Source: Bacillus subtilis subsp. subtilis str. 168 (lineage in GTDB: Bacteria > Bacillota > Bacilli > Bacillales > Bacillaceae). From it: DNA of 64,000 bases. The DNA lies in assembly GCF_000009045.1 (NCBI RefSeq), contig NC_000964.3, forward strand, positions 248,001 through 312,000. Reading direction: 5' to 3'. The number at the start of each line of letters is the position of its first letter. Position 1 is the first letter of the stretch. Under the pieces are notes generated by a model that saw only the letters and a program-made list of their open reading frames with translations, was not told the DNA's origin and ran no database searches. Shown one piece after another: positions 5,518-48,285 of the stretch. A program made the translations under genes and the position numbers.

Positions 5518-6762
5518 CTATATGCTTTCAGTTTGGCTGTTTGCGGAAACCCATTCTTTTTGGCGGAAGGCCTTTTCCCATTTTGATACCACGATACAGG
5601 CGATCGCATGTCCCGGTACGTTCACGCCTGTTCTCGCCATGTCCATGACGCGGTCAACACCCGCGATAATGGCAACGCCTTCAGCCGGCAGTCCTACAGC
5701 ATTGGCAGTCGCCAGAAGAACTACAAGCGATCCTGAGGGTACAGCTGCAATGCCTTTACTGGTCATCACAAGCACAAGCATCATGAGCAGCTGCTGGGAC
5801 AATGTCATGTCTACTTGAAAGGCCTGTGCGAGAAAGATACAAGAAACCGATAAATATAAGCTGGAGCCGTCACAGTTCAATGACAAGCCGGAGGGAACGA
5901 CAAATGATACCACTCGTTTGGGACAGCCGTATTTCTCCATTCTATCCATCAGCTGAGGGAGAATGGTTTCAGTGCTTGTGGTGGAAAATGCAATTAAAAA
6001 CAGATCCCATATCATTTTCAATACTTCGAAATACTTAATCTGAAAGATGAGACCGACAAGCGGAAAGAGGACAAAGAGGATCAGGAACAGGCCAAGGAAT
6101 ACGGTGCCAACCAGCTTAAACATAGGGAGGAGGAGTTCAATGCCATATTGGCCTACAGAAGCAGCCATCAGGGCTAACACGCCGATAGGAGCAGTGACCA
6201 TGACGATTTGCGTGAGCTTGAACATAATCTGAGCTGTAGATTCAAAAAACTTCATTACTGGTTCAGAAGCTTTGCCGATACCAGCTGCGGCGACACCAAA
6301 TAAAATGGCGAAGAAAATAACGGCAAGCAAATCATTTCTGGCCATGACATCAATAATGTTTGTAGGGATAATATCCAGGATCATTTGCTTGAAATCAACA
6401 ACTTTGTCTGTGTAGCCGGAAAGTTCATGAATATCTTTTTTTGCCAAATGGGAGAGGTCAAGCCCGACACCTGGTTTTAAGACATTCGCTAATAAAAGTC
6501 CAAGCCCTAATACCAACGTTGTAATCACTTCGAACCAAATGATCGTCTTGATGCCGAGACTGCCCATTTTTTTCATGCTTCCGCTTCCTGCGGCTCCAAT
6601 GACAATGGTAGAAAATACAATCGGCACAACAATCATTTTAATCAGGCGGATAAATCCATCTCCGACAGGCCTCAGTGCCATCCCGAAATCAGGAAAAAAG
6701 TGGCCGATCACCGCGCCGACAGCCAAAGCGATTAAAATTTGAAACGCGATTAATTTTTTCAA
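5518..6762 (-). CDS. gltP: Proton/glutamate-aspartate symporter (DAACS family)
   Basis: FIRLIKMIVVP, AFSTTSTE, GLSLNCDG, RVMDMARTGVNV; TTG start. Confidence 0.92.
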   Translation of the reverse strand: MKKLIAFQILIALAVGAVIGHFFPDFGMALRPVGDGFIRLIKMIVVPIVFSTIVIGAAGSGSMKKMGSLGIKTIIWFEVITTLVLGLGLLLANVLKPGVGLDLSHLAKKDIHELSGYTDKVVDFKQMILDIIPTNIIDVMARNDLLAVIFFAILFGVAAAGIGKASEPVMKFFESTAQIMFKLTQIVMVTAPIGVLALMAASVGQYGIELLLPMFKLVGTVFLGLFLILFVLFPLVGLIFQIKYFEVLKMIWDLFLIAFSTTSTETILPQLMDRMEKYGCPKRVVSFVVPSGLSLNCDGSSLYLSVSCIFLAQAFQVDMTLSQQLLMMLVLVMTSKGIAAVPSGSLVVLLATANAVGLPAEGVAIIAGVDRVMDMARTGVNVPGHAIACIVVSKWEKAFRQKEWVSANSQTESI

Positions 6763-6851
6763 ATGAATCCCCCTTTAGAACGATAGAATGTAGGCATATT
6801 CATATCATTCGTGATTCAAATGCAAACACCTTTTTTCAAGTTATTTTATTT

Positions 6852-6865
6852 TGACAGCGCTTTCA
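6852..6865 (-). promoter_or_regulatory. Catabolite responsive element (cre) upstream of gltP
   Basis: TGAAAGCGCTGTCA on the minus strand fits TGWNANCGNTNWCA. Confidence 0.6.
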
Positions 6866-6876
6866 TTATGTTGGCG

Positions 6877-6906
6877 AAAAAGTCCCCCGCAGCAGGGGGG
6901 ACTTTT
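6877..6906 (-). terminator. Terminator after gamP
   Basis: AAAAAGTCCCCC...GGGGGACTTTTT stem. Confidence 0.8.
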
Positions 6907-8802
6907 TTACTTCATTTGAATGTGCTTTAGATCTTCTTCAGAGGTATTTGTGAAAATAACCGGTGTTATGGCTGAAGCGGCATGCTGCTTGATGTAATTG
7001 AGATCAAAGGTGAGAAGCAGTTCGCCTTGTTTGACGGCTTGTCCGCTTGTGACATGTGCTTCAAAGCCTTCCCCATTCAGTTTGACGGTATCGATGCCGA
7101 CATGAATCAGGATTTCAGTGCCGCCGGCGCTCATAAAGCCGATGGCGTGTTTTGTCGGAAAAATCGAGACGATCTCGCCGTCCGCAGGTGCAACGACTTT
7201 TCCTTCTGATGGTATAATCGCAAATCCCTCGCCCATCATTTTTTCTGAAAAGACCTGATCAGGCACATCCCCTAAAGAGACTGTTTCTCCTTTAATCGGA
7301 TAAATAAAGGTCTCATCGGAATCGGGCTTCAGCGGTTTGTCAGTTACCGTGTCCAGCGCGGCGGCGGTGGCAGGGACGCCTCCGGCCATGATTGTTTTGA
7401 TGTCGTCTTTTAAGGCATCGGACTTGGTTCCGAATATTGCCTGGAAGTTGTTGTTGACCTCCAGCACACCTACTGCACCAAGCCGTTTTAATTCATCCTT
7501 GCAGACTTGGCTTGGCTGATGAACGGTCACACGAAGCCTTGTGATACATGCATCCAGGTTAGCGATATTTTGCTGTCCGCCCAAGGCCTGCAGCACGTGA
7601 AAGGCAAGCTGGTCTTTTGCAACTGGAGCTTTCTCCTCATTCTGACCGTCTTCATCTGTCTCACGGCCGGGCGTTTTCAAATTCCATTTCAGAATCGCAA
7701 ATCGGAACAAATAATAATAAATGAAAGCAAACACGATCCCGACAGGAATGACAACCCAGCCGTTTGTAGACAGTCCGTAGTTCAAGACGTAGTCAATTCC
7801 TCCGCCTGAGAACGTATAGCCGTGGCGGACATGGAATAAATCACAAACGACAAAGATGACGCCGGCAAGAATAGAGTTAATCAAATAGAGCACGGGCGCA
7901 ACGAACAAGAAAGAAAACTCAACCGGTTCTGTAATTCCGGTCAGCATAGATGTGAGCGCCGCAGAAATCATCACGCCGGAGATCATTTTTTTCTTTTCCG
8001 GACGCGCGGTATGGATAATGGCAAGAGCAACGGCCGGCAGACAGAAAATCATGTAAGGGAAATCCCCCATCATAAAGCGCCCGGCTGTCGGGTCTCCCGC
8101 GAAAAACCTTGTCAGGTCGCCGGTTACGGTGTTGCCTGTTGATGGGTCTGTGTATTCTCCCATCATAAAATAGAAAGGCGTATAAAAAATATGATGCAGG
8201 CCAAAAGGAATCAGCAAACGATAGATCGTTGCATAAAAGAACAGGCCGACTGTTGAATCGGCAATTAAACTGCTGGCTGCGTTAATTCCGTTTTGGATCA
8301 GCGGCCAAACGAATGAGAAAATGACGCCGATCACCAATGAACTGACGGAAGTAATGATCGGGACAAAGCGTTTTCCAGAGAAAAATCCAAGGACCGGATG
8401 CAGCTCGATTGATGAAAATCGCTTATATAAATAGGCGGCGAGAAGCCCGATAATGATTCCTCCGAAAACCCCCATATCAATCAGGTGCTCGGCTCCTTCA
8501 TACGGAGGCTGAAGGCCGAGTAATTTTCCCATATTGTCGAGGGTGACGGTTAAAATTAAGTATCCGATGACAGCGGCAAGTCCGGCTACACCTTCTCCGC
8601 CGGCTAATCCGATCGCGACCCCCACGGCGAAAATCAGCGGAAGGTTATCGAATACAACGCCGCCCGCATCCTTTATAATAGGGATGTTCAGTAAATCCTT
8701 GTCTCCGAAACGGAGCAAAAGACCTGCTGCCGGCAGGACGGCAACCGGAGTCATCAACGCGCGGCCAAGCTGCTGCAGAATTTGAAATGCCTTTTTAAAC
8801 AT
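6907..8802 (-). CDS. gamP: PTS glucosamine-specific EIICBA
   Basis: EIIC (GITEPVEFSF), EIIB (LDACITRLRV) and EIIA (ILIHVGIDTV) domains in order. Confidence 0.95.
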   Translation of the reverse strand: MFKKAFQILQQLGRALMTPVAVLPAAGLLLRFGDKDLLNIPIIKDAGGVVFDNLPLIFAVGVAIGLAGGEGVAGLAAVIGYLILTVTLDNMGKLLGLQPPYEGAEHLIDMGVFGGIIIGLLAAYLYKRFSSIELHPVLGFFSGKRFVPIITSVSSLVIGVIFSFVWPLIQNGINAASSLIADSTVGLFFYATIYRLLIPFGLHHIFYTPFYFMMGEYTDPSTGNTVTGDLTRFFAGDPTAGRFMMGDFPYMIFCLPAVALAIIHTARPEKKKMISGVMISAALTSMLTGITEPVEFSFLFVAPVLYLINSILAGVIFVVCDLFHVRHGYTFSGGGIDYVLNYGLSTNGWVVIPVGIVFAFIYYYLFRFAILKWNLKTPGRETDEDGQNEEKAPVAKDQLAFHVLQALGGQQNIANLDACITRLRVTVHQPSQVCKDELKRLGAVGVLEVNNNFQAIFGTKSDALKDDIKTIMAGGVPATAAALDTVTDKPLKPDSDETFIYPIKGETVSLGDVPDQVFSEKMMGEGFAIIPSEGKVVAPADGEIVSIFPTKHAIGFMSAGGTEILIHVGIDTVKLNGEGFEAHVTSGQAVKQGELLLTFDLNYIKQHAASAITPVIFTNTSEEDLKHIQMK

Positions 8803-26028: not shown

Positions 26029-27561
26029 ATGGCGATGAACCTCAGGAAGAACCAAGCCCCCCTTTACATCAAAGTGCATGAAATAGATAACACCGCGATT
26101 ATTGTAAATGATGGAGGGCTGCCAAAGGGCACTGTTTTCTCATGCGGGCTCGTACTTGAAGAGGATGTTCCTCAAGGCCATAAGGTGGCCCTCACCGATC
26201 TCAATCAAGGGGACGAGATCGTGCGTTACGGAGAGGTGATCGGATTTGCTGATGAGACGATCAAACGCGGGAGCTGGATACGGGAAGCCCTCGTGAGAAT
26301 GCCCGCTCCTCCGGCGTTAGACGATCTTCCTCTCGCAAACAGGGTGCCGCAGCCGCGGCCCCCACTTGAAGGATATACATTTGAAGGATACCGAAATGCG
26401 GATGGCAGTGCGGGGACAAAAAATATCCTCGGCATCACGACAAGTGTTCAATGTGTTGTTGGCGTTTTGGATTATGCAGTCAAACGAATAAAAGAAGAGC
26501 TGCTGCCGAAATACCCAAATGTCGATGACGTTGTGCCGCTGCATCATCAATACGGATGCGGCGTGGCGATCAATGCGCCCGACGCTGTCATTCCGATCCG
26601 CACGATTCAAAATCTTGCGAAGCATCCGAACTTCGGCGGTGAAGTAATGGTAATCGGATTGGGATGTGAAAAGCTCCTCCCGGAAAGAATTGCCTCCGAA
26701 AATGATGATGACATTCTATCGCTCCAGGATCACCGAGGTTTTGCGGCGATGATCCAATCCATTTTGGAAATGGCGGAGGAACGGTTAATCAGGCTGAACA
26801 GCAGAACCCGGGTGTCATGCCCTGTTTCGGATCTGGTTATCGGCCTGCAATGCGGCGGCAGTGATGCGTTTTCCGGCGTGACGGCGAACCCTGCCGTGGG
26901 GTATGCGGCTGATTTATTGGTTCGCGCAGGTGCAACGGTTTTGTTTTCTGAAGTGACAGAGGTGCGGGATGCCATTCATTTATTAACGCCGCGGGCTGTC
27001 AGTGAAGAGGTCGGACAATCGCTGATCAAAGAGATGAAGTGGTATGACAGCTATCTTCGGCGGGGAGACGCAGACCGTAGCGCAAACCCGTCACCAGGCA
27101 ATAAAAAAGGCGGATTATCCAATGTGGTGGAAAAAGCGTTAGGTTCGGTAGCGAAATCAGGCACAAGCCCCATCTCCGGCGTGCTCGGCCCTGGTGAAAG
27201 AGCAAAGCAAAAAGGCCTGCTGTTCGCGGCGACACCGGCAAGCGATTTTGTGTGCGGCACCCTGCAGCTGGCTGCGGGCATGAATTTGCAGGTGTTTACG
27301 ACAGGGAGAGGAACACCATATGGCCTGGCTGCTGCGCCGGTTCTGAAAGTATCGACGCGGCATTCCTTATCAGAGCATTGGGCTGATTTAATCGATATCA
27401 ATGCCGGCCGAATCGCGACAGGAGAGGCCAGTATCGAAGACGTAGGCTGGGAAATCTTCAGGACGATTTTGGATGTGGCAAGCGGCCGCAAACAAACGTG
27501 GGCAGACCGTTGGGGTCTTCATAATGATTTGTGCTTGTTTAATCCTGCTCCAGTGACTTGA
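26029..27561 (+). CDS. garD: Galactarate dehydratase (UxaA family)
   Basis: SAF domain [30 protein letters not shown]. Confidence 0.95.
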
Positions 27562-27637
27562 TTCATGTTTTTATAGCGGAAAGATGGAATATGCTGTAAA
27601 ATGAAAATCAGCGTATAGGAAACGGAGGGGTTACAGC

Positions 27638-27676
27638 ATGGCATTCATTAGATTCCGAGTGACACGAATTCAATAG
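27638..27676 (+). CDS. Putative macrolide-sensing leader peptide MAFIRFRVTRIQ
   Basis: SD GGAGGGG 7 nt before ATG; R-F-R motif; lies upstream of a macrolide kinase. Confidence 0.7.
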   Translation: MAFIRFRVTRIQ

Positions 27677-27754
27677 TGAACAACTCTCGCCTGAATGCGA
27701 GAGAATCGGGATGAATCCGCCTATGTATGAGCCCTTATATGGTTATCAAAAAAG

Positions 27755-27778
27755 AGGGTGGCGTGCCTGCCCTTTTTT
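27755..27778 (+). terminator. Attenuator terminator in the mphK leader
   Basis: AGGGTGG/CTGCCCT stem (extendable by A6/T6 pairing) followed by T6, about 60 nt before the start codon. Confidence 0.6.
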
Positions 27779-27837
27779 GTGCCTTCAAGCATCCCTTCTC
27801 TCTACTGCAGGCCGGAGCATGAGAAAGGGGAAATGGG

Positions 27838-28758
27838 ATGACAAACCTTAACGAAAAACAGCTTATCACTGAGATTGTCGGGCTTGCACGCAGCCAAGGT
27901 TTGACGGTTCATTCTGAGAACGCGCAATTGAATGAAACCGGAATGGACTTTCAAGTTGTATTTGCCAAGGACGACACAGGTATGCCATGGGTGCTGCGAA
28001 AACCGCGGCGAAGTGATGTTGTGGAAAGAGCATCTGCAGAAGGCATAACGCTTGCCTTTCTCCGCGCGAATCTGACTGCTGATGTGCCGGATTGGAGAAT
28101 TCATACACCGGAATTGATCGCTTACCCCATGTTAAAAGGAACGCCGGCTGCTGGAATTGACTTGGAACAAAAGCAATATGTATGGAATATGGATCATCAG
28201 CCGCCGTCAGACGACTTTGTCCGCACACTTGCCGACATACTGGCTGAATTACATGGCACGGATCAAATATCTGCTGGGCAATCCGGAATAGAAGTGATAA
28301 GGCCAGAAGATTTCAGGCAAATGACAGCAGACTCTATGGTTGATGTGAAGAATAAGCTTGGCGTATCTACGACGCTTTGGGAAAGATGGCAAAAGTGGGT
28401 AGATGATGATGCATACTGGCCGGGTTTCTCTTCTTTGATACACGGCGATCTCCACCCGCCGCATATCCTTATCGATCAAAATGGACGTGTCACAGGACTT
28501 CTGGATTGGACAGAAGCGAAGGTTGCTGACCCAGCCAAGGATTTTGTTCTTTATCAAACCATTTTCGGAGAAAAAGAAACTGCCCGTTTGCTTGAATACT
28601 ATGATCAAGCAGGCGGCCGAATATGGGCAAAAATGCAGGAACACATCTCAGAGATGCAGGCGGCGTATCCGGTGGAAATCGCCAAGCTAGCTCTGCAAAC
28701 ACAGCAGGAGGAACACATCAATATGGCGCTGGAAGCACTTGGTGTAACATCGGATTAA
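27838..28758 (+). CDS. mphK: Macrolide 2'-phosphotransferase (APH/Mph family, YcbJ)
   Basis: NETGMDFQV, WVLRKPRR, HGDLHPPH, GLLDWTEA motifs typical of Mph kinases. Confidence 0.9.
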   Translation: MTNLNEKQLITEIVGLARSQGLTVHSENAQLNETGMDFQVVFAKDDTGMPWVLRKPRRSDVVERASAEGITLAFLRANLTADVPDWRIHTPELIAYPMLKGTPAAGIDLEQKQYVWNMDHQPPSDDFVRTLADILAELHGTDQISAGQSGIEVIRPEDFRQMTADSMVDVKNKLGVSTTLWERWQKWVDDDAYWPGFSSLIHGDLHPPHILIDQNGRVTGLLDWTEAKVADPAKDFVLYQTIFGEKETARLLEYYDQAGGRIWAKMQEHISEMQAAYPVEIAKLALQTQQEEHINMALEALGVTSD

Positions 28759-28796: not shown

Positions 28797-29080
28797 TACA
28801 AATAATAGAACGGATTAACAATCGTGAGGAAGAGCAAGTACGCATCAGAATGGAGGTTCAGAGAGTCGGTGGCAGGTGTGAACCGATCCTCCCCTGATGC
28901 CGAATGGGCTTCTGAATTGCTTTGCTGAACGGATAGTAGGCGATGCCGGGTTTCTCTCCCCGTTACCAAGAGAGGAGTATCGAAACATAGGTTTTCTGTA
29001 CTTAGAGTGAACGGCTGTATAGCTGTTAATAAAGGTGGTACCGCGAGACCCTCGTCCTTTGCATAGGACGGGGGTTTTTT
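28797..29080 (+). ncRNA. tRNA-Trp T-box riboswitch leader
   Basis: T-box AAAGGTGGTACCGCG at 29031-29045; terminator ACCCTCGTCCT/AGGACGGGGGT-T5 at 29048-29080; specifier UGG at 28905-28907. Confidence 0.92.
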
Positions 29081-29159: not shown

Positions 29160-29321
29160 ATGGTCATTGCAACTGATGATCTTGAGGTCGCATGTCCTAA
29201 ATGTGAAAGAGCGGGAGAAATCGAAGGAACACCTTGCCCGGCCTGCAGCGGAAAAGGTGTTATTCTGACTGCTCAAGGATATACGCTTCTCGATTTTATC
29301 CAAAAGCATTTGAATAAGTAA
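29160..29321 (+). CDS. rtpA: Anti-TRAP protein (53 aa)
   Basis: MVIATDDLEVACPKCERAGEIEGTPCPACSGKG with two CxxCxGxG-type zinc motifs; SD AAAGGAGG. Confidence 0.95.
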   Translation: MVIATDDLEVACPKCERAGEIEGTPCPACSGKGVILTAQGYTLLDFIQKHLNK

Positions 29322-29323
29322 AG

Positions 29324-29365
29324 GAGAAAAGCTGAGCTGAGATGAGAGCAGAAGAGCAGAGTAAG
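29324..29365 (+). promoter_or_regulatory. TRAP binding site overlapping the ycbK SD and start
   Basis: NAG triplets in 5-nt phase at 29324, 29329, 29334, 29339, 29344, 29349, 29354, 29359, plus AAG at 29363. Confidence 0.85.
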
Positions 29366-30280
29366 ATTCGTGAGGCCGCAGCAGGTACGATTTTTTTGCT
29401 GATCGGAACAGTTTGTTTTGCGTCTAAATCGATTTGGATAAAATGGGCATACCAAATGGGTGCTGAGCCAGATGCCGTGCTGCTATACAGGCAGCTGCTG
29501 GCTGTTCCGCTGTTTTGGCTGATTTTTTTAATATACCGTCCTCCAATGCCAGACGGTAAGAAAAAAGGAGACCTATGGAAGGCTTGTGGCGCGGGAGTGT
29601 TTTGTTTTTTTCTGTCTCCCTTGCTTGATTTTATCGGGCTGAACCATGTATCCGCAATGGTTGAACGTATATTGCTGATGAGCTATCCGTTGTTTGTGTT
29701 TGGATTCACCGCGTGTCGTGACCGGAAAATGTCCTCAATTCAGGACCTTTTCGCAGTTCTGGCGGTCATGTTTGGGCTTTTCTTGGCGCTGGGCGGCTGG
29801 AATGCTGAGCTTTTCCAGGCGAATATGATTGGAGCTGTATTCATTTTGTTATCTTCGGCCGTCTATGCTGGTTATCTTGTCCTTTCCGGGCATCTCGTCC
29901 ATCAAATCGGAGGGATCCGTCTCAATGCATACGGGATGACAGCTGCTGGAGCTGCCATGATGCTTTACACAGGGATAAAATCGGCGGCTGGCATGAATAC
30001 GCCAATGGCAGCATATCCGCTTTCTATGTATGGTTTGTTCGCAGTAATTGCAGTCGTTACCACAGTGATTCCATTTGTGCTAATGCTTGAGGGCATAAAA
30101 CGAATCGGGGCACAGCGAGCCGCCGCCATTTCAATGGCAGGGCCTATCCTGACGATTTTCTATGGAGCTTTATTTCTCGGTGAACGGCTCGGGCTCATTC
30201 AAGTCATTGGATGCGGTGGCGTATTTTTTGTCATTACGGGCATGGAATACAGGAAGCTGAAAACAGGAAAAAAAGAATAA
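29342..30280 (+). CDS. ycbK: EamA/DMT-family transporter (putative Trp efflux)
   Basis: Ten hydrophobic segments in two EamA repeats, GPILTIFYGALFLGERL. Confidence 0.88.
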   Translation: MRAEEQSKIREAAAGTIFLLIGTVCFASKSIWIKWAYQMGAEPDAVLLYRQLLAVPLFWLIFLIYRPPMPDGKKKGDLWKACGAGVFCFFLSPLLDFIGLNHVSAMVERILLMSYPLFVFGFTACRDRKMSSIQDLFAVLAVMFGLFLALGGWNAELFQANMIGAVFILLSSAVYAGYLVLSGHLVHQIGGIRLNAYGMTAAGAAMMLYTGIKSAAGMNTPMAAYPLSMYGLFAVIAVVTTVIPFVLMLEGIKRIGAQRAAAISMAGPILTIFYGALFLGERLGLIQVIGCGGVFFVITGMEYRKLKTGKKE

Positions 30281-47583: not shown

Positions 47584-48285
47584 TCAAAAATAGTAGTTTT
47601 GAAAATAATCAAGCTGCTGCTTAGTGATCATCGCTTTTTTAGACGTTCCCTCAAAGGAAACTGTGAATGAATGCTTGGTATAAGCGGAAAAATGCTTTAT
47701 GTAATGAATGTTGATAATAAAGGAACGATGCGAACGAAGAAAATCTTTTTCGGGCAGGTCGCCTTTAATATCATTTAATGTTTGATACGTTTGCACCTCT
47801 TCGGCGGTTGTCACAATCGTCGTCGAACGTCCCGTCCGTTCTGCGAAAATAATATCCTTCTTTTGCAGGACGTGCATTTCAGACTTTTGCTTTATCAATA
47901 TACGCCCATTCAAACTCGTTTCCGTTTTCTTTTTCAAGTACCGGTCGAAGGAAGCGGCCAGACGGTCGGCATAGTACGGCTTCATAATATAATCATGGAC
48001 GTTCAGGTCAAAGGCGTGAACCGCATAACCGCCGTGGCCGGTAACAAAAATCACATCCACATCAAGTGAATGGGATTTGATCAAATCAGCAAGCTCGTAG
48101 CCAGACATATGGGGCATCTCGATATCGGCAAGCAGCAGATCAATGTCTCCGTTCTTTACCCGCCTGTAGGCTTCCTTCGCTGAATCGGTGGAAAAGACAA
48201 TTTCGACGTCCTGCATTCTGGACACGATCGCTTCTAACTTCTCTAAATCTACTCGATAATCATCTACAAGTCCGACTTTTACCAT
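47584..48285 (-). CDS. natR: LytTR-family response regulator
   Basis: LADIEMP receiver plus FLRSHRSFIIN LytTR motif. Confidence 0.93.
   Translation of the reverse strand: MVKVGLVDDYRVDLEKLEAIVSRMQDVEIVFSTDSAKEAYRRVKNGDIDLLLADIEMPHMSGYELADLIKSHSLDVDVIFVTGHGGYAVHAFDLNVHDYIMKPYYADRLAASFDRYLKKKTETSLNGRILIKQKSEMHVLQKKDIIFAERTGRSTTIVTTAEEVQTYQTLNDIKGDLPEKDFLRSHRSFIINIHYIKHFSAYTKHSFTVSFEGTSKKAMITKQQLDYFQNYYF

Follow-up and report, generated by a model that had tools for sequence, protein, structure and literature searches.

A 64,000-nucleotide (nt) stretch of the Bacillus subtilis subsp. subtilis str. 168 chromosome (NC_000964.3, positions 248,001 to 312,000; hereafter the window) carries mphK (ycbJ), which encodes a macrolide 2'-phosphotransferase of described enzymology (PMC5760710), and the spacer between mphK and its upstream neighbour garD, which ends at 27561, holds a short upstream open reading frame (uORF) that we propose as the drug sensor of mphK. 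The mphK reading frame (27838-28758, 306 amino acids (aa)) lies on the same strand as the uORF, and its product is 98% identical to the cluster named MphK. Read directly from the sequence, the uORF has a Shine-Dalgarno (SD) sequence GGAGGGG at 27624-27630, a 7 nt spacer (TTACAGC, 27631-27637) and the codons ATG GCA TTC ATT AGA TTC CGA GTG ACA CGA ATT CAA TAG at 27638-27676, that is 12 sense codons for the peptide MAFIRFRVTRIQ and a TAG at 27674-27676, followed in frame by TGA at 27677-27679 to give tandem stops. The initial annotation had described this SD, spacer, codon string and peptide, and had placed an Arg-Phe-Arg (RFR) motif at codons 5-7; re-reading the window reproduced each of these exactly, RFR falling at 27650-27658, with 161 nt between the uORF stop and the mphK ATG. 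A short uORF with its own SD, directly 5' of a macrolide-resistance gene on the same strand, is characteristic of leaders in which macrolide-bound ribosomes arrest at an Arg/Lys-x-Arg/Lys (+x+) motif, as is the presence of that motif within the first ~10 codons, where it is kept as a peptide feature. The elements named so far are as follows.

27597-27602, forward strand: putative -10 hexamer TAAAAT of the leader's own promoter, conserved 25-30 nt 5' of the SD in orthologues
27624-27630, forward strand: uORF SD GGAGGGG, within the invariant block AACGGAGGG (alignments A1 and A2)
27638-27679, forward strand: leader uORF MAFIRFRVTRIQ with stops TAG and TGA, kept in 24 mph loci
27650-27658, forward strand: predicted arrest site AGA TTC CGA (Arg5-Phe6-Arg7, +x+), the Phe6 codon at 27653-27655
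27838-28758, forward strand: mphK (ycbJ), macrolide 2'-phosphotransferase, 306 aa

We compared 27 loci coding for MphK homologues of 40-92% identity, and in 24 of them found the leader, namely block AACGGAGGG followed 6-10 nt on by ATG, GTG or TTG and an open reading frame (ORF) of 7-15 codons. These loci span the genera Bacillus, Paenibacillus, Brevibacillus, Neobacillus and Alkalihalobacillus, and the start codon, which switches between ATG, GTG and TTG, is present in all 24 leaders. R-x-R occurs in 21 of the 24 genome leaders (as RFR, RLR, RMR or RIR) and in 7/7 mph-type leaders from metagenomes (mph visible downstream in six), against a chance expectation of ~2.3% of random 11-codon stretches of the same base composition. 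Conservation of the uORF upstream of Bacillus mph genes, a check which had been suggested when the leader was first noticed, is therefore borne out. As the gene 5' of the leader varies by lineage (garD, DUF4885, TENA, GFO_IDH and others), it is mph, and not garD, that the leader accompanies. The peptides encoded by these uORFs are as follows.

subtilis group: MAFIRFR(V/L)TRIQ, MAFIRFRLIRIQ, MAFMRFRLKRIQ
B. tequilensis: MTSMRIR
B. atrophaeus: MAFIRFRFTLWHTN
licheniformis group: MAYIRFRLNFV(L/T)AN
B. gaemokensis: MAFLRFRFCTLSR
Alkalihalobacillus and a relative: MAFYRLRFQG, MAFCRLRFQGMNH
Paenibacillus: MANYFRLRTLR, MLDYSRLRSFRG, MLIAYIRLRNARC
Brevibacillus: MANQYIRMRILYTTI
Neobacillus: MLITYLRLRNVQN
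further mph-type leaders from metagenomes: MAFFRSRFHTVSR, MAFFRFRFHTLSR, MLDHFSRLRTLRH

The B. tequilensis uORF (L004:2785-3010) stops right after its motif, as in the tlrB leader, and in B. velezensis, B. siamensis and B. nakamurai the leader sits ~215 nt 5' of mph.

A conserved RNA pairing element (AUUCCGA:UCGGGAU) shares nucleotides with the RFR codons, so that nucleotide conservation alone is no proof of selection on the peptide. R-x-R, however, is found in three registers with respect to the conserved YCCG pairing element, shifted by two codons either way: in the Bacillus register (AGA-UUC-CGA) the CGA inside the element is the second Arg, in the register shared by Paenibacillus, Brevibacillus and Neobacillus ((Y)YC-CGN-UUR/AUG-AGA) the same CGN is the first Arg, and in Alkalihalobacillus (AGA-CUA-AGA-UUC) both Arg codons lie 5' of the element. 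The motif is built from at least eight codon combinations, with AGA, CGA, CGC and CGT all used for Arg. Because R-x-R is kept through these register shifts, the alignments argue for selection on the peptide motif itself. Preceding the first Arg there is mostly a hydrophobic or aromatic residue (I, M, L, Y, F; also C and S), and F, L, I, M or S serves as x, whilst the C-terminal halves of the peptides are unrelated between species. In most genera a stop block, CUAAUNRAAUAG, supplies stops in all three frames, of which different species use different ones; the uORFs of Alkalihalobacillus and B. tequilensis end earlier. As the ORFs close in a shared stop block, the end point of translation is constrained, the sequence of the tail is not.

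Single-sequence folds of 21 leaders agree on one architecture, a three-way junction with a closing helix (P1), a small hairpin (P1b) and a second hairpin (P2), which in the window occupy the following positions.

27625-27660, forward strand: P1 5' strand (SD, AUG and uORF codons 1-8), from the 21 folds and covariation counts
27659-27681, forward strand: P1b, small hairpin of the uORF end and stop codons (helix 3, 84% of cells paired)
27684-27703, forward strand: P2, hairpin CUCUCGC-cugaau-GCGAGAG, -11.3 kcal/mol
27704-27736, forward strand: P1 3' strand, comprising AAUCGGGAU, CCGCCU and the anti-SD1 segment GAGCCCUU, from folds and covariation

Across the leaders, the 5' strand of P1 takes in the SD, the AUG and codons 1-8, its 3' strand consists of AAUCGGGAU, CUGCCU and (A)ACCC(UU), and the blocks AAUCGGGAU and CUGCCU are near-invariant. 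On alignment A2, 81% of the cells in the junction are paired, compared with 35-49% when the partners are slid by 1-3 columns, 16 of the 38 pairs show changes on both sides, and the number of double-change cells was reached by none of 500 shuffles; the covariation score was 0.208, against 0.07-0.12 in the slid controls. P2 (helix 4), which reads CUCUGCC-loop-GCAGAG in other leaders, has double changes across species in five of its six pairs. Individual compensations include GGGUUACGUA:UACGUAACCC in P. lautus, GGUUUCUUGU:ACAGGAAAC in Alkalihalobacillus, and an A-U to G-C change in the P1 inner helix of the amyloliquefaciens clade detected with RNAalifold. The RFR codons lie within the P1 5' strand, hence the predicted stall site overlaps an RNA element whose release would alter the downstream structure, as is expected of a +x+ leader. 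RNAalifold on the full alignment offered a different pairing, SD1:anti-SD2, which we did not adopt, the MAFFT alignment being poor there and the single folds preferring SD1:anti-SD1. A search of the leader against Rfam 15 gave PrrB_RsmZ as its sole match (18 bits against a gathering threshold of 44, E 0.27), which we dismiss as chance.

Between the uORF and the gene lies an intrinsic terminator (T1), the arrangement of an attenuator, and most other genera have a second one (T2) immediately 5' of the mph SD.

27750-27778, forward strand: T1, terminator-like hairpin AAAAGAGGGUGG cgugc CUGCCCUUUUUU with U-tract (U6), -13.2 kcal/mol, weak in 168
L012:2942-2964: T2, with equivalents in L015, L016, L018, L020, L021, L023, L025 and L026

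Eighteen of the 24 leaders contain T1, which is stronger in orthologues (-14 to -23 kcal/mol); a terminator pattern scan of the window did not flag it, the B. halotolerans T1 was flagged. T2 reads CACAGGCAG-loop-CCUGUGU7, and in the subtilis group its 3' arm and U-tract are lost, with only the 5' half CAGGCGGAG kept. B. tequilensis (L004) has a different upstream neighbourhood and T1 is deleted there, the segment B and SD hairpin described below being kept.

Downstream of T1, two features of the window bear on translation of mphK itself.

27789-27818, forward strand: segment B GCAUCCCUUCUCUCUACUGCAGGCCGGAGC, with anti-SD2 (27790-27803) and the sequence complementary to the P2 5' arm
27821-27830, forward strand: mphK SD (SD2) GAGAAAGGGG, paired with 27792-27802 in a local hairpin of -15.5 kcal/mol

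The core of anti-SD2, CCCUUCUCUC at 27793-27802, pairs with the mphK SD, which is masked in the default fold (mean unpaired probability of the SD region 0.31), as in translational attenuation. Segment B is also complementary to segment A, which consists of P2 and the inner P1 3' strand (27683-27714), and the resulting A:B duplex has 22 bp (CUCU:GGAG, GCCUG:CAGGC, GAGAGAA:UUCUCUC and GGGAUG:CAUCCC) and an energy of -33.6 kcal/mol, with none of 200 shuffles as good. When the best duplex of A was sought over the whole downstream region, the same two- or three-helix topology was recovered at the equivalent place in 24/24 leaders (z -0.5 to -5.9). In species with T2, segment A lands on an element X, (U)UCCG(A/U)UUAC, and on the T2 5' arm, and X changes in step with the bases that follow GGGAU (AAG:CUU, GGG:CCC, AGG:CCU, UGG:CCA); this predicted T2 antiterminator of the other genera is a two-helix pairing of 9-16 bp, conserved with covariation and reaching 16 bp in P. 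lautus. Because segment A pairs with X and the T2 5' arm in the one case and with anti-SD2 in the other, the modelled duplex would be an antiterminator of T2 in most genera and an anti-anti-SD in B. subtilis.

In 168 with P1 intact, the OFF fold (core -36.7 kcal/mol plus SD2 hairpin -15.5 kcal/mol) wins easily. With the P1 5' strand unavailable, P2 (-11.3) and the SD2 hairpin (-15.5) sum to -26.8 kcal/mol, against -33.6 kcal/mol for the duplex before any loop penalty. We assessed the ON fold by constrained folding of the full-length leader with the stall footprint masked, its energy being expressed relative to the masked minimum free energy (MFE). It equals the MFE in B. halotolerans and B. 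mojavensis, lies +0.1 to +2 kcal/mol from it in B. inaquosorum, B. atrophaeus, B. swezeyi and Neobacillus, at +3.8 kcal/mol in B. gaemokensis, +5 kcal/mol in B. spizizenii and +6 kcal/mol in B. subtilis 168, and at about +10 kcal/mol in three distant species. As masked full-length folding was thus mixed, giving ON in two of eight subtilis-group species and no change in 168, we rely on complementarity and covariation and not on the MFE.

R1, a covariance model trained on mph leaders alone, finds the leader as a single copy in the window (27618-27759). A weak match at 47759-47843 on the minus strand (12.6 bits, E 0.73) is most likely chance. Metagenomic leaders were recovered with a two-block pattern taken from mph leaders, which guarantees 20 of ~154 positions, and 13 of 29 pattern matches were confirmed by R1, the other 16 being chance. 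One leader recovered in this way (L053, leader 6305-6462) scores 114.1 bits with R1 (E 4e-27), encodes a uORF TTG-MKFIKLRLEALSTLIE with K-L-R, and has both T1 and T2, and the gene downstream of it (6581-7849) is the GTPase HflX (450 bits against an NCBIfam cut-off of 217). The mph leader is therefore homologous, in sequence and structure, to an hflX-linked leader; an Rfam search with the hflX-linked relative gave no match. Four further leaders (L032, L034, L035 and L052), at ~50 bits with R1, lie 5' of an SDR oxidoreductase of the PRK08263 subfamily and have a 6-codon uORF (GTG-MID(S/C)SR-stop), element X and T2, as in the following example.

L052:3633-3787, minus strand: SDR-linked leader
L052:2596-3495, minus strand: SDR gene

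It is possible that this SDR gene is a candidate antibiotic-responsive gene that has gone unrecognised. The hflX linkage recalls uORFC-6-1, a candidate element described as a Bacillales RLR uORF with covarying structure 3' of the start codon, found mainly 5' of hflX (PMC8632094). Since association with hflX, occurrence in Bacillales, an RLR uORF and covarying structure all agree, the mph leader fits uORFC-6-1, a likeness drawn from that verbal description and from L053 and not from the published consensus (PMC8632094). We suggest, tentatively, that a single modular macrolide/ketolide cassette (SD, R-x-R uORF, junction and terminator-capturing duplex) stands before at least three unrelated gene classes (Mph, HflX(r) and SDR), that its output was rewired from T2 to an SD hairpin in the B. 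subtilis lineage, that the SDR protein is a candidate antibiotic-responsive and possibly antibiotic-modifying enzyme, and that the inducers of mph are matched to its descladinose substrates; taken as a whole, this is an attractive possibility to which we would give somewhat less than even weight.

The leader may also be transcribed from its own start. Transcription would begin at ~27609, and in B. swezeyi the putative promoter reads TTGTGA-17-TAAAAT, preceded by TG. A 108 nt small RNA candidate, ncr214, has been reported at 168 coordinates 275609-275716 (PMC2965217), which corresponds to window 27609-27716 if the offset is 248,000; it would then start 7 nt past TAAAAT and cover the uORF and P2, and its 108 nt length may mirror the sequencing read length and not a true 3' end. 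A tiling-array segment, S95, is described as 5' of ycbJ (PMC3498285), and together ncr214 (PMC2965217) and S95 provide independent transcript evidence for a short sense RNA in the garD-mphK spacer. Other ORFs in this region, one of 46 aa within the leader (27711-27851) and two on the minus strand (27608-27673 and 27519-27644), were rejected, since they change length or are lost in sister species.

Taken together, the comparative evidence makes it probable that the uORF, through its translation, acts as sensor for a ribosome-dependent attenuator, in which a macrolide or ketolide stall turns mphK on. We infer here the translation of the uORF, the drug-dependent arrest, the drug spectrum and the switch itself. 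In the absence of drug, a ribosome would pass through the 12 codons and leave at the tandem stops, the leader would fold into the P1/P1b/P2 junction with P1 burying the uORF SD, the AUG and the RFR codons, most transcripts would end at T1 and, on read-through, the mphK SD would stay paired with the pyrimidine tract 27790-27803. With a macrolide or ketolide in the exit tunnel, the ribosome would arrest on the RFR codons, Phe6 occupying the P site and Arg7 the A site, a predicted geometry modelled on those of ErmDL (PMC8298421) and of the tlrB leader (PMC6851288). Its footprint (~27641-27670) would cover the P1 5' strand and prevent P1, and the freed AAUCGGGAU would nucleate on CAUCCC, invade P2 and form the 22-bp duplex with 27789-27818, stripping the anti-SD from the mphK SD and allowing MphK to be translated. 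In other genera the same duplex would sequester the 5' arm of T2 just before mph. As this duplex targets the T2 5' arm elsewhere and anti-SD2 in the subtilis group, a transcriptional switch has apparently become a translational one in the subtilis lineage. Tylosin, spiramycin and ketolides are the most likely inducers, because MphK and MphI act efficiently only on macrolides without a C3 cladinose (tylosin, spiramycin, telithromycin; PMC5760710, PMC5155152), because +x+ is the critical determinant of stalling with telithromycin, which erythromycin stalling on ErmDL does not need (PMC8298421), and because the RYR +x+ motif in the tlrB leader is a site of ribosome stalling by tylosin (PMC6851288).

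Several observations weigh against such a switch. The mph homologues of B. cereus (L017), Cohnella (L022) and Brevibacterium (L014) have no leader, and R1 gave no match at these three loci. A literature search found no test of RFR as an arrest motif in any system, and the literature searched yielded no data on expression of mphK under macrolides. mphK is absent from the loci reported to be induced by chloramphenicol, which argues against a general stress response and is silent on macrolides (PMC13689557). T1 forms whether or not the uORF is masked, and a search for a T1 antiterminator (folds of the stalled state without the T1 3' arm, RNAduplex of the T1 5' arm against everything upstream, and the masked MFE) found none that beats shuffles, the sole competitor being a 6-bp GCCCUU:GAGGGU helix of the subtilis group that is no better than shuffles; T1 may be a leaky gate, serving garD read-through too, or it may be kinetically controlled. 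For strain 168 itself, a promoter consensus scan of the window gave no promoter at the leader, the -35 being poor, the ON fold carries the +6 kcal/mol penalty given above, and SD2 accessibility is flat in the masked ensemble (0.31 vs 0.32). The B. amyloliquefaciens clade (L010, L011 and L013), finally, has the only mph leaders lacking R-x-R: SD, fold, stop block and T1 are retained and the uORF, read in another register, encodes MA(S/D/N)Q(N/I)PVFAL(I/M)K, such that either the motif has been lost there or another arrest signal is used.

Leaders of this last kind, with SD, uORF, fold and terminators and no R-x-R, would suit a general sensor of slowed translation, comparable to bmrB-bmrCD or rli80-hflXr and responsive to several inhibitor classes (lincosamides, phenicols and macrolides), for which R-x-R would be just one of several ways of slowing a ribosome on the P1 5' strand. 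The SDR-linked leaders with their 6-codon MID(S/C)SR uORF, again without R-x-R, point the same way, as do the response of rli80 (RLR) to lincomycin as well (PMC6310831) and the reported induction of tlrB by chloramphenicol in strain 3610 (PMC13689557). A general sensor leaves unexplained, however, why R-x-R is kept in mph leaders although the register has shifted at least three times and the codons come in eight combinations, a pattern that speaks for selection of this specific motif, and mphK is missing from the listed chloramphenicol-induced loci (PMC13689557); we regard this explanation as unlikely, without being negligible. The difficulties specific to 168 could instead mean that its leader is a decaying remnant, with T2 lost, T1 merely ending the glucarate/galactarate operon (garD), mphK essentially cryptic and no working drug switch. 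The missing T2 3' arm and U-tract in the subtilis group, the unfavourable ON fold, the poor promoter consensus, the independence of T1 from uORF occupancy and an extra C in the CAGGC(C)GGAG partner in 168 and B. stercoris are all consistent with decay. Yet the SD, the first seven uORF codons, P1, P2 and the anti-SD2 blocks are near-invariant in the eight subtilis-group species with T1 whilst their flanking intergenic sequence has diverged, the A:B duplex still has its 22 bp and beats 200/200 shuffles, and B. tequilensis, which dropped T1, retained SD-uORF-RIR and segment B, so that decay strikes us as improbable.

Structure could in principle be the whole story: the very strong conservation of AAUCGGGAU and CUGCCU, and a three-way junction backed by covariation, would also be seen in a riboswitch or a protein-binding RNA to which the small ORF is incidental. 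Such an RNA, though, would not need an invariant strong SD 6-10 nt from a start codon that varies and never vanishes, a uORF that closes in the stop block in most genera, or an R-x-R that shifts against the RNA element; the two alternative pairings, P1 and A:B, fully account for the conserved blocks, no Rfam family matches, and we consider this reading very improbable. A chance origin of the uORF within the garD-mphK spacer, which its mere 12 codons and the plenty of short ORFs in any spacer might suggest, is effectively refuted by the comparative data, the uORF being kept in 24 loci, in five genera and in different neighbourhoods, with a covariance-model match of 114.5 bits (the window sequence being in the training set). 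The reading of the uORF as a macrolide-arrest leader is supported by all the tests that sequence permits.

Directly 3' of mphK lies the known tRNA-Trp-sensing operon T-box-rtpA-ycbK, comprising a T-box leader (RF00230, 126 bits) at 28815-29062, rtpA (anti-TRAP, 53 aa, a full-length match to PDB 2bx9) at 29160-29321 and ycbK, an EamA-type transporter, at 29342-30280.

Every resistome screen of B. subtilis probiotics names MphK among the intrinsic resistance genes, and we know of no publication on how mphK is expressed. If the leader senses drug as proposed, this would explain the phenotypic silence of mphK until it is induced, and mphK would to our knowledge be the first macrolide kinase under direct +x+ arrest-peptide control. 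Searches of the literature on mphK, ycbJ, mphI and macrolide phosphotransferase in combination with leader, attenuation or induction returned no description of the element, which the supplements of Term-seq or erythromycin-transcriptome studies might nevertheless list. The suggestion in the initial annotation that no such switch was known for this gene accordingly holds for reports on mphK and mphI, but needs tempering for the leader's kin, which fit the published uORFC-6-1 as described in words (PMC8632094). A recent list of uORF attenuators in B. subtilis contains bmrCD, vmlR, tlrB and ytbDE only (PMC13689557), to which the mphK leader would add a fifth. The mechanism class is well known; less ordinary here are the use of one sensor cassette for three gene classes and an apparent lineage-specific change of output from terminator to SD masking. 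A cassette standing before mph, hflX and SDR genes would be usable as a sequence tag for further macrolide-responsive genes, and the natural R-x-R contexts (IRFR, YRLR, SRLR, IRMR, MRIR, FRSR and IKLR) would form a panel for the context dependence of macrolide/ketolide arrest.

ErmDL, the leader of ermD/ermK in Bacillus licheniformis, is likewise short with Arg-x-Arg near codons 5-8 (Arg6-Leu7-Arg8; some mph leaders read ...YRLRF...), and both leaders serve Bacillus resistance genes. ermK is controlled by transcription attenuation with two tandem terminators, as T1 and T2 are arranged in most mph leaders. Unlike ErmDL, the leader described here precedes a drug-inactivating kinase and not an rRNA methylase, its RNA architecture is another one (three-way junction with long-range duplex), the two sequences are not homologous, and the middle residue in B. 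subtilis is Phe. ErmDL holds Leu7 in the P site and Arg8 in the A site (PMC8298421), and the mph leader is predicted to behave alike, with x in the P site. The 14-aa RLR uORF of rli80-hflXr in Listeria, which controls a macrolide/lincosamide resistance factor by attenuation, follows the same logic and has been validated experimentally (PMC6310831), and uORFC-6-1 is reported mainly 5' of hflX, with no mention of mph that we could find (PMC8632094).

Within B. subtilis, the tlrB (yxjB) leader has a +x+ motif (RYR, with Tyr in the P site and Arg in the A site), a terminator, an SD hairpin and tandem stops (PMC6851288); it is induced by tylosin and not by erythromycin (PMC6851288), and tylosin is a good substrate of MphK (PMC5760710). 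In the tlrB leader the stalled ribosome itself blocks the terminator and the SD hairpin, and NusG-dependent pausing is essential; in the mph leader, unlike tlrB, the predicted stall site lies ~100 nt 5' of T1 and ~140 nt 5' of the anti-SD, for which reason it would need an RNA relay, the A:B duplex. Among macrolide kinases, mph(A) is controlled by the TetR-family repressor MphR(A), which binds erythromycin, and mph(C) rides behind the msr(A) leader, both being macrolide-inducible. Neither MphR(A)-mph(A) nor msr(A)-mph(C) is known to have a dedicated +x+ uORF directly 5' of the kinase gene, unlike mphK.

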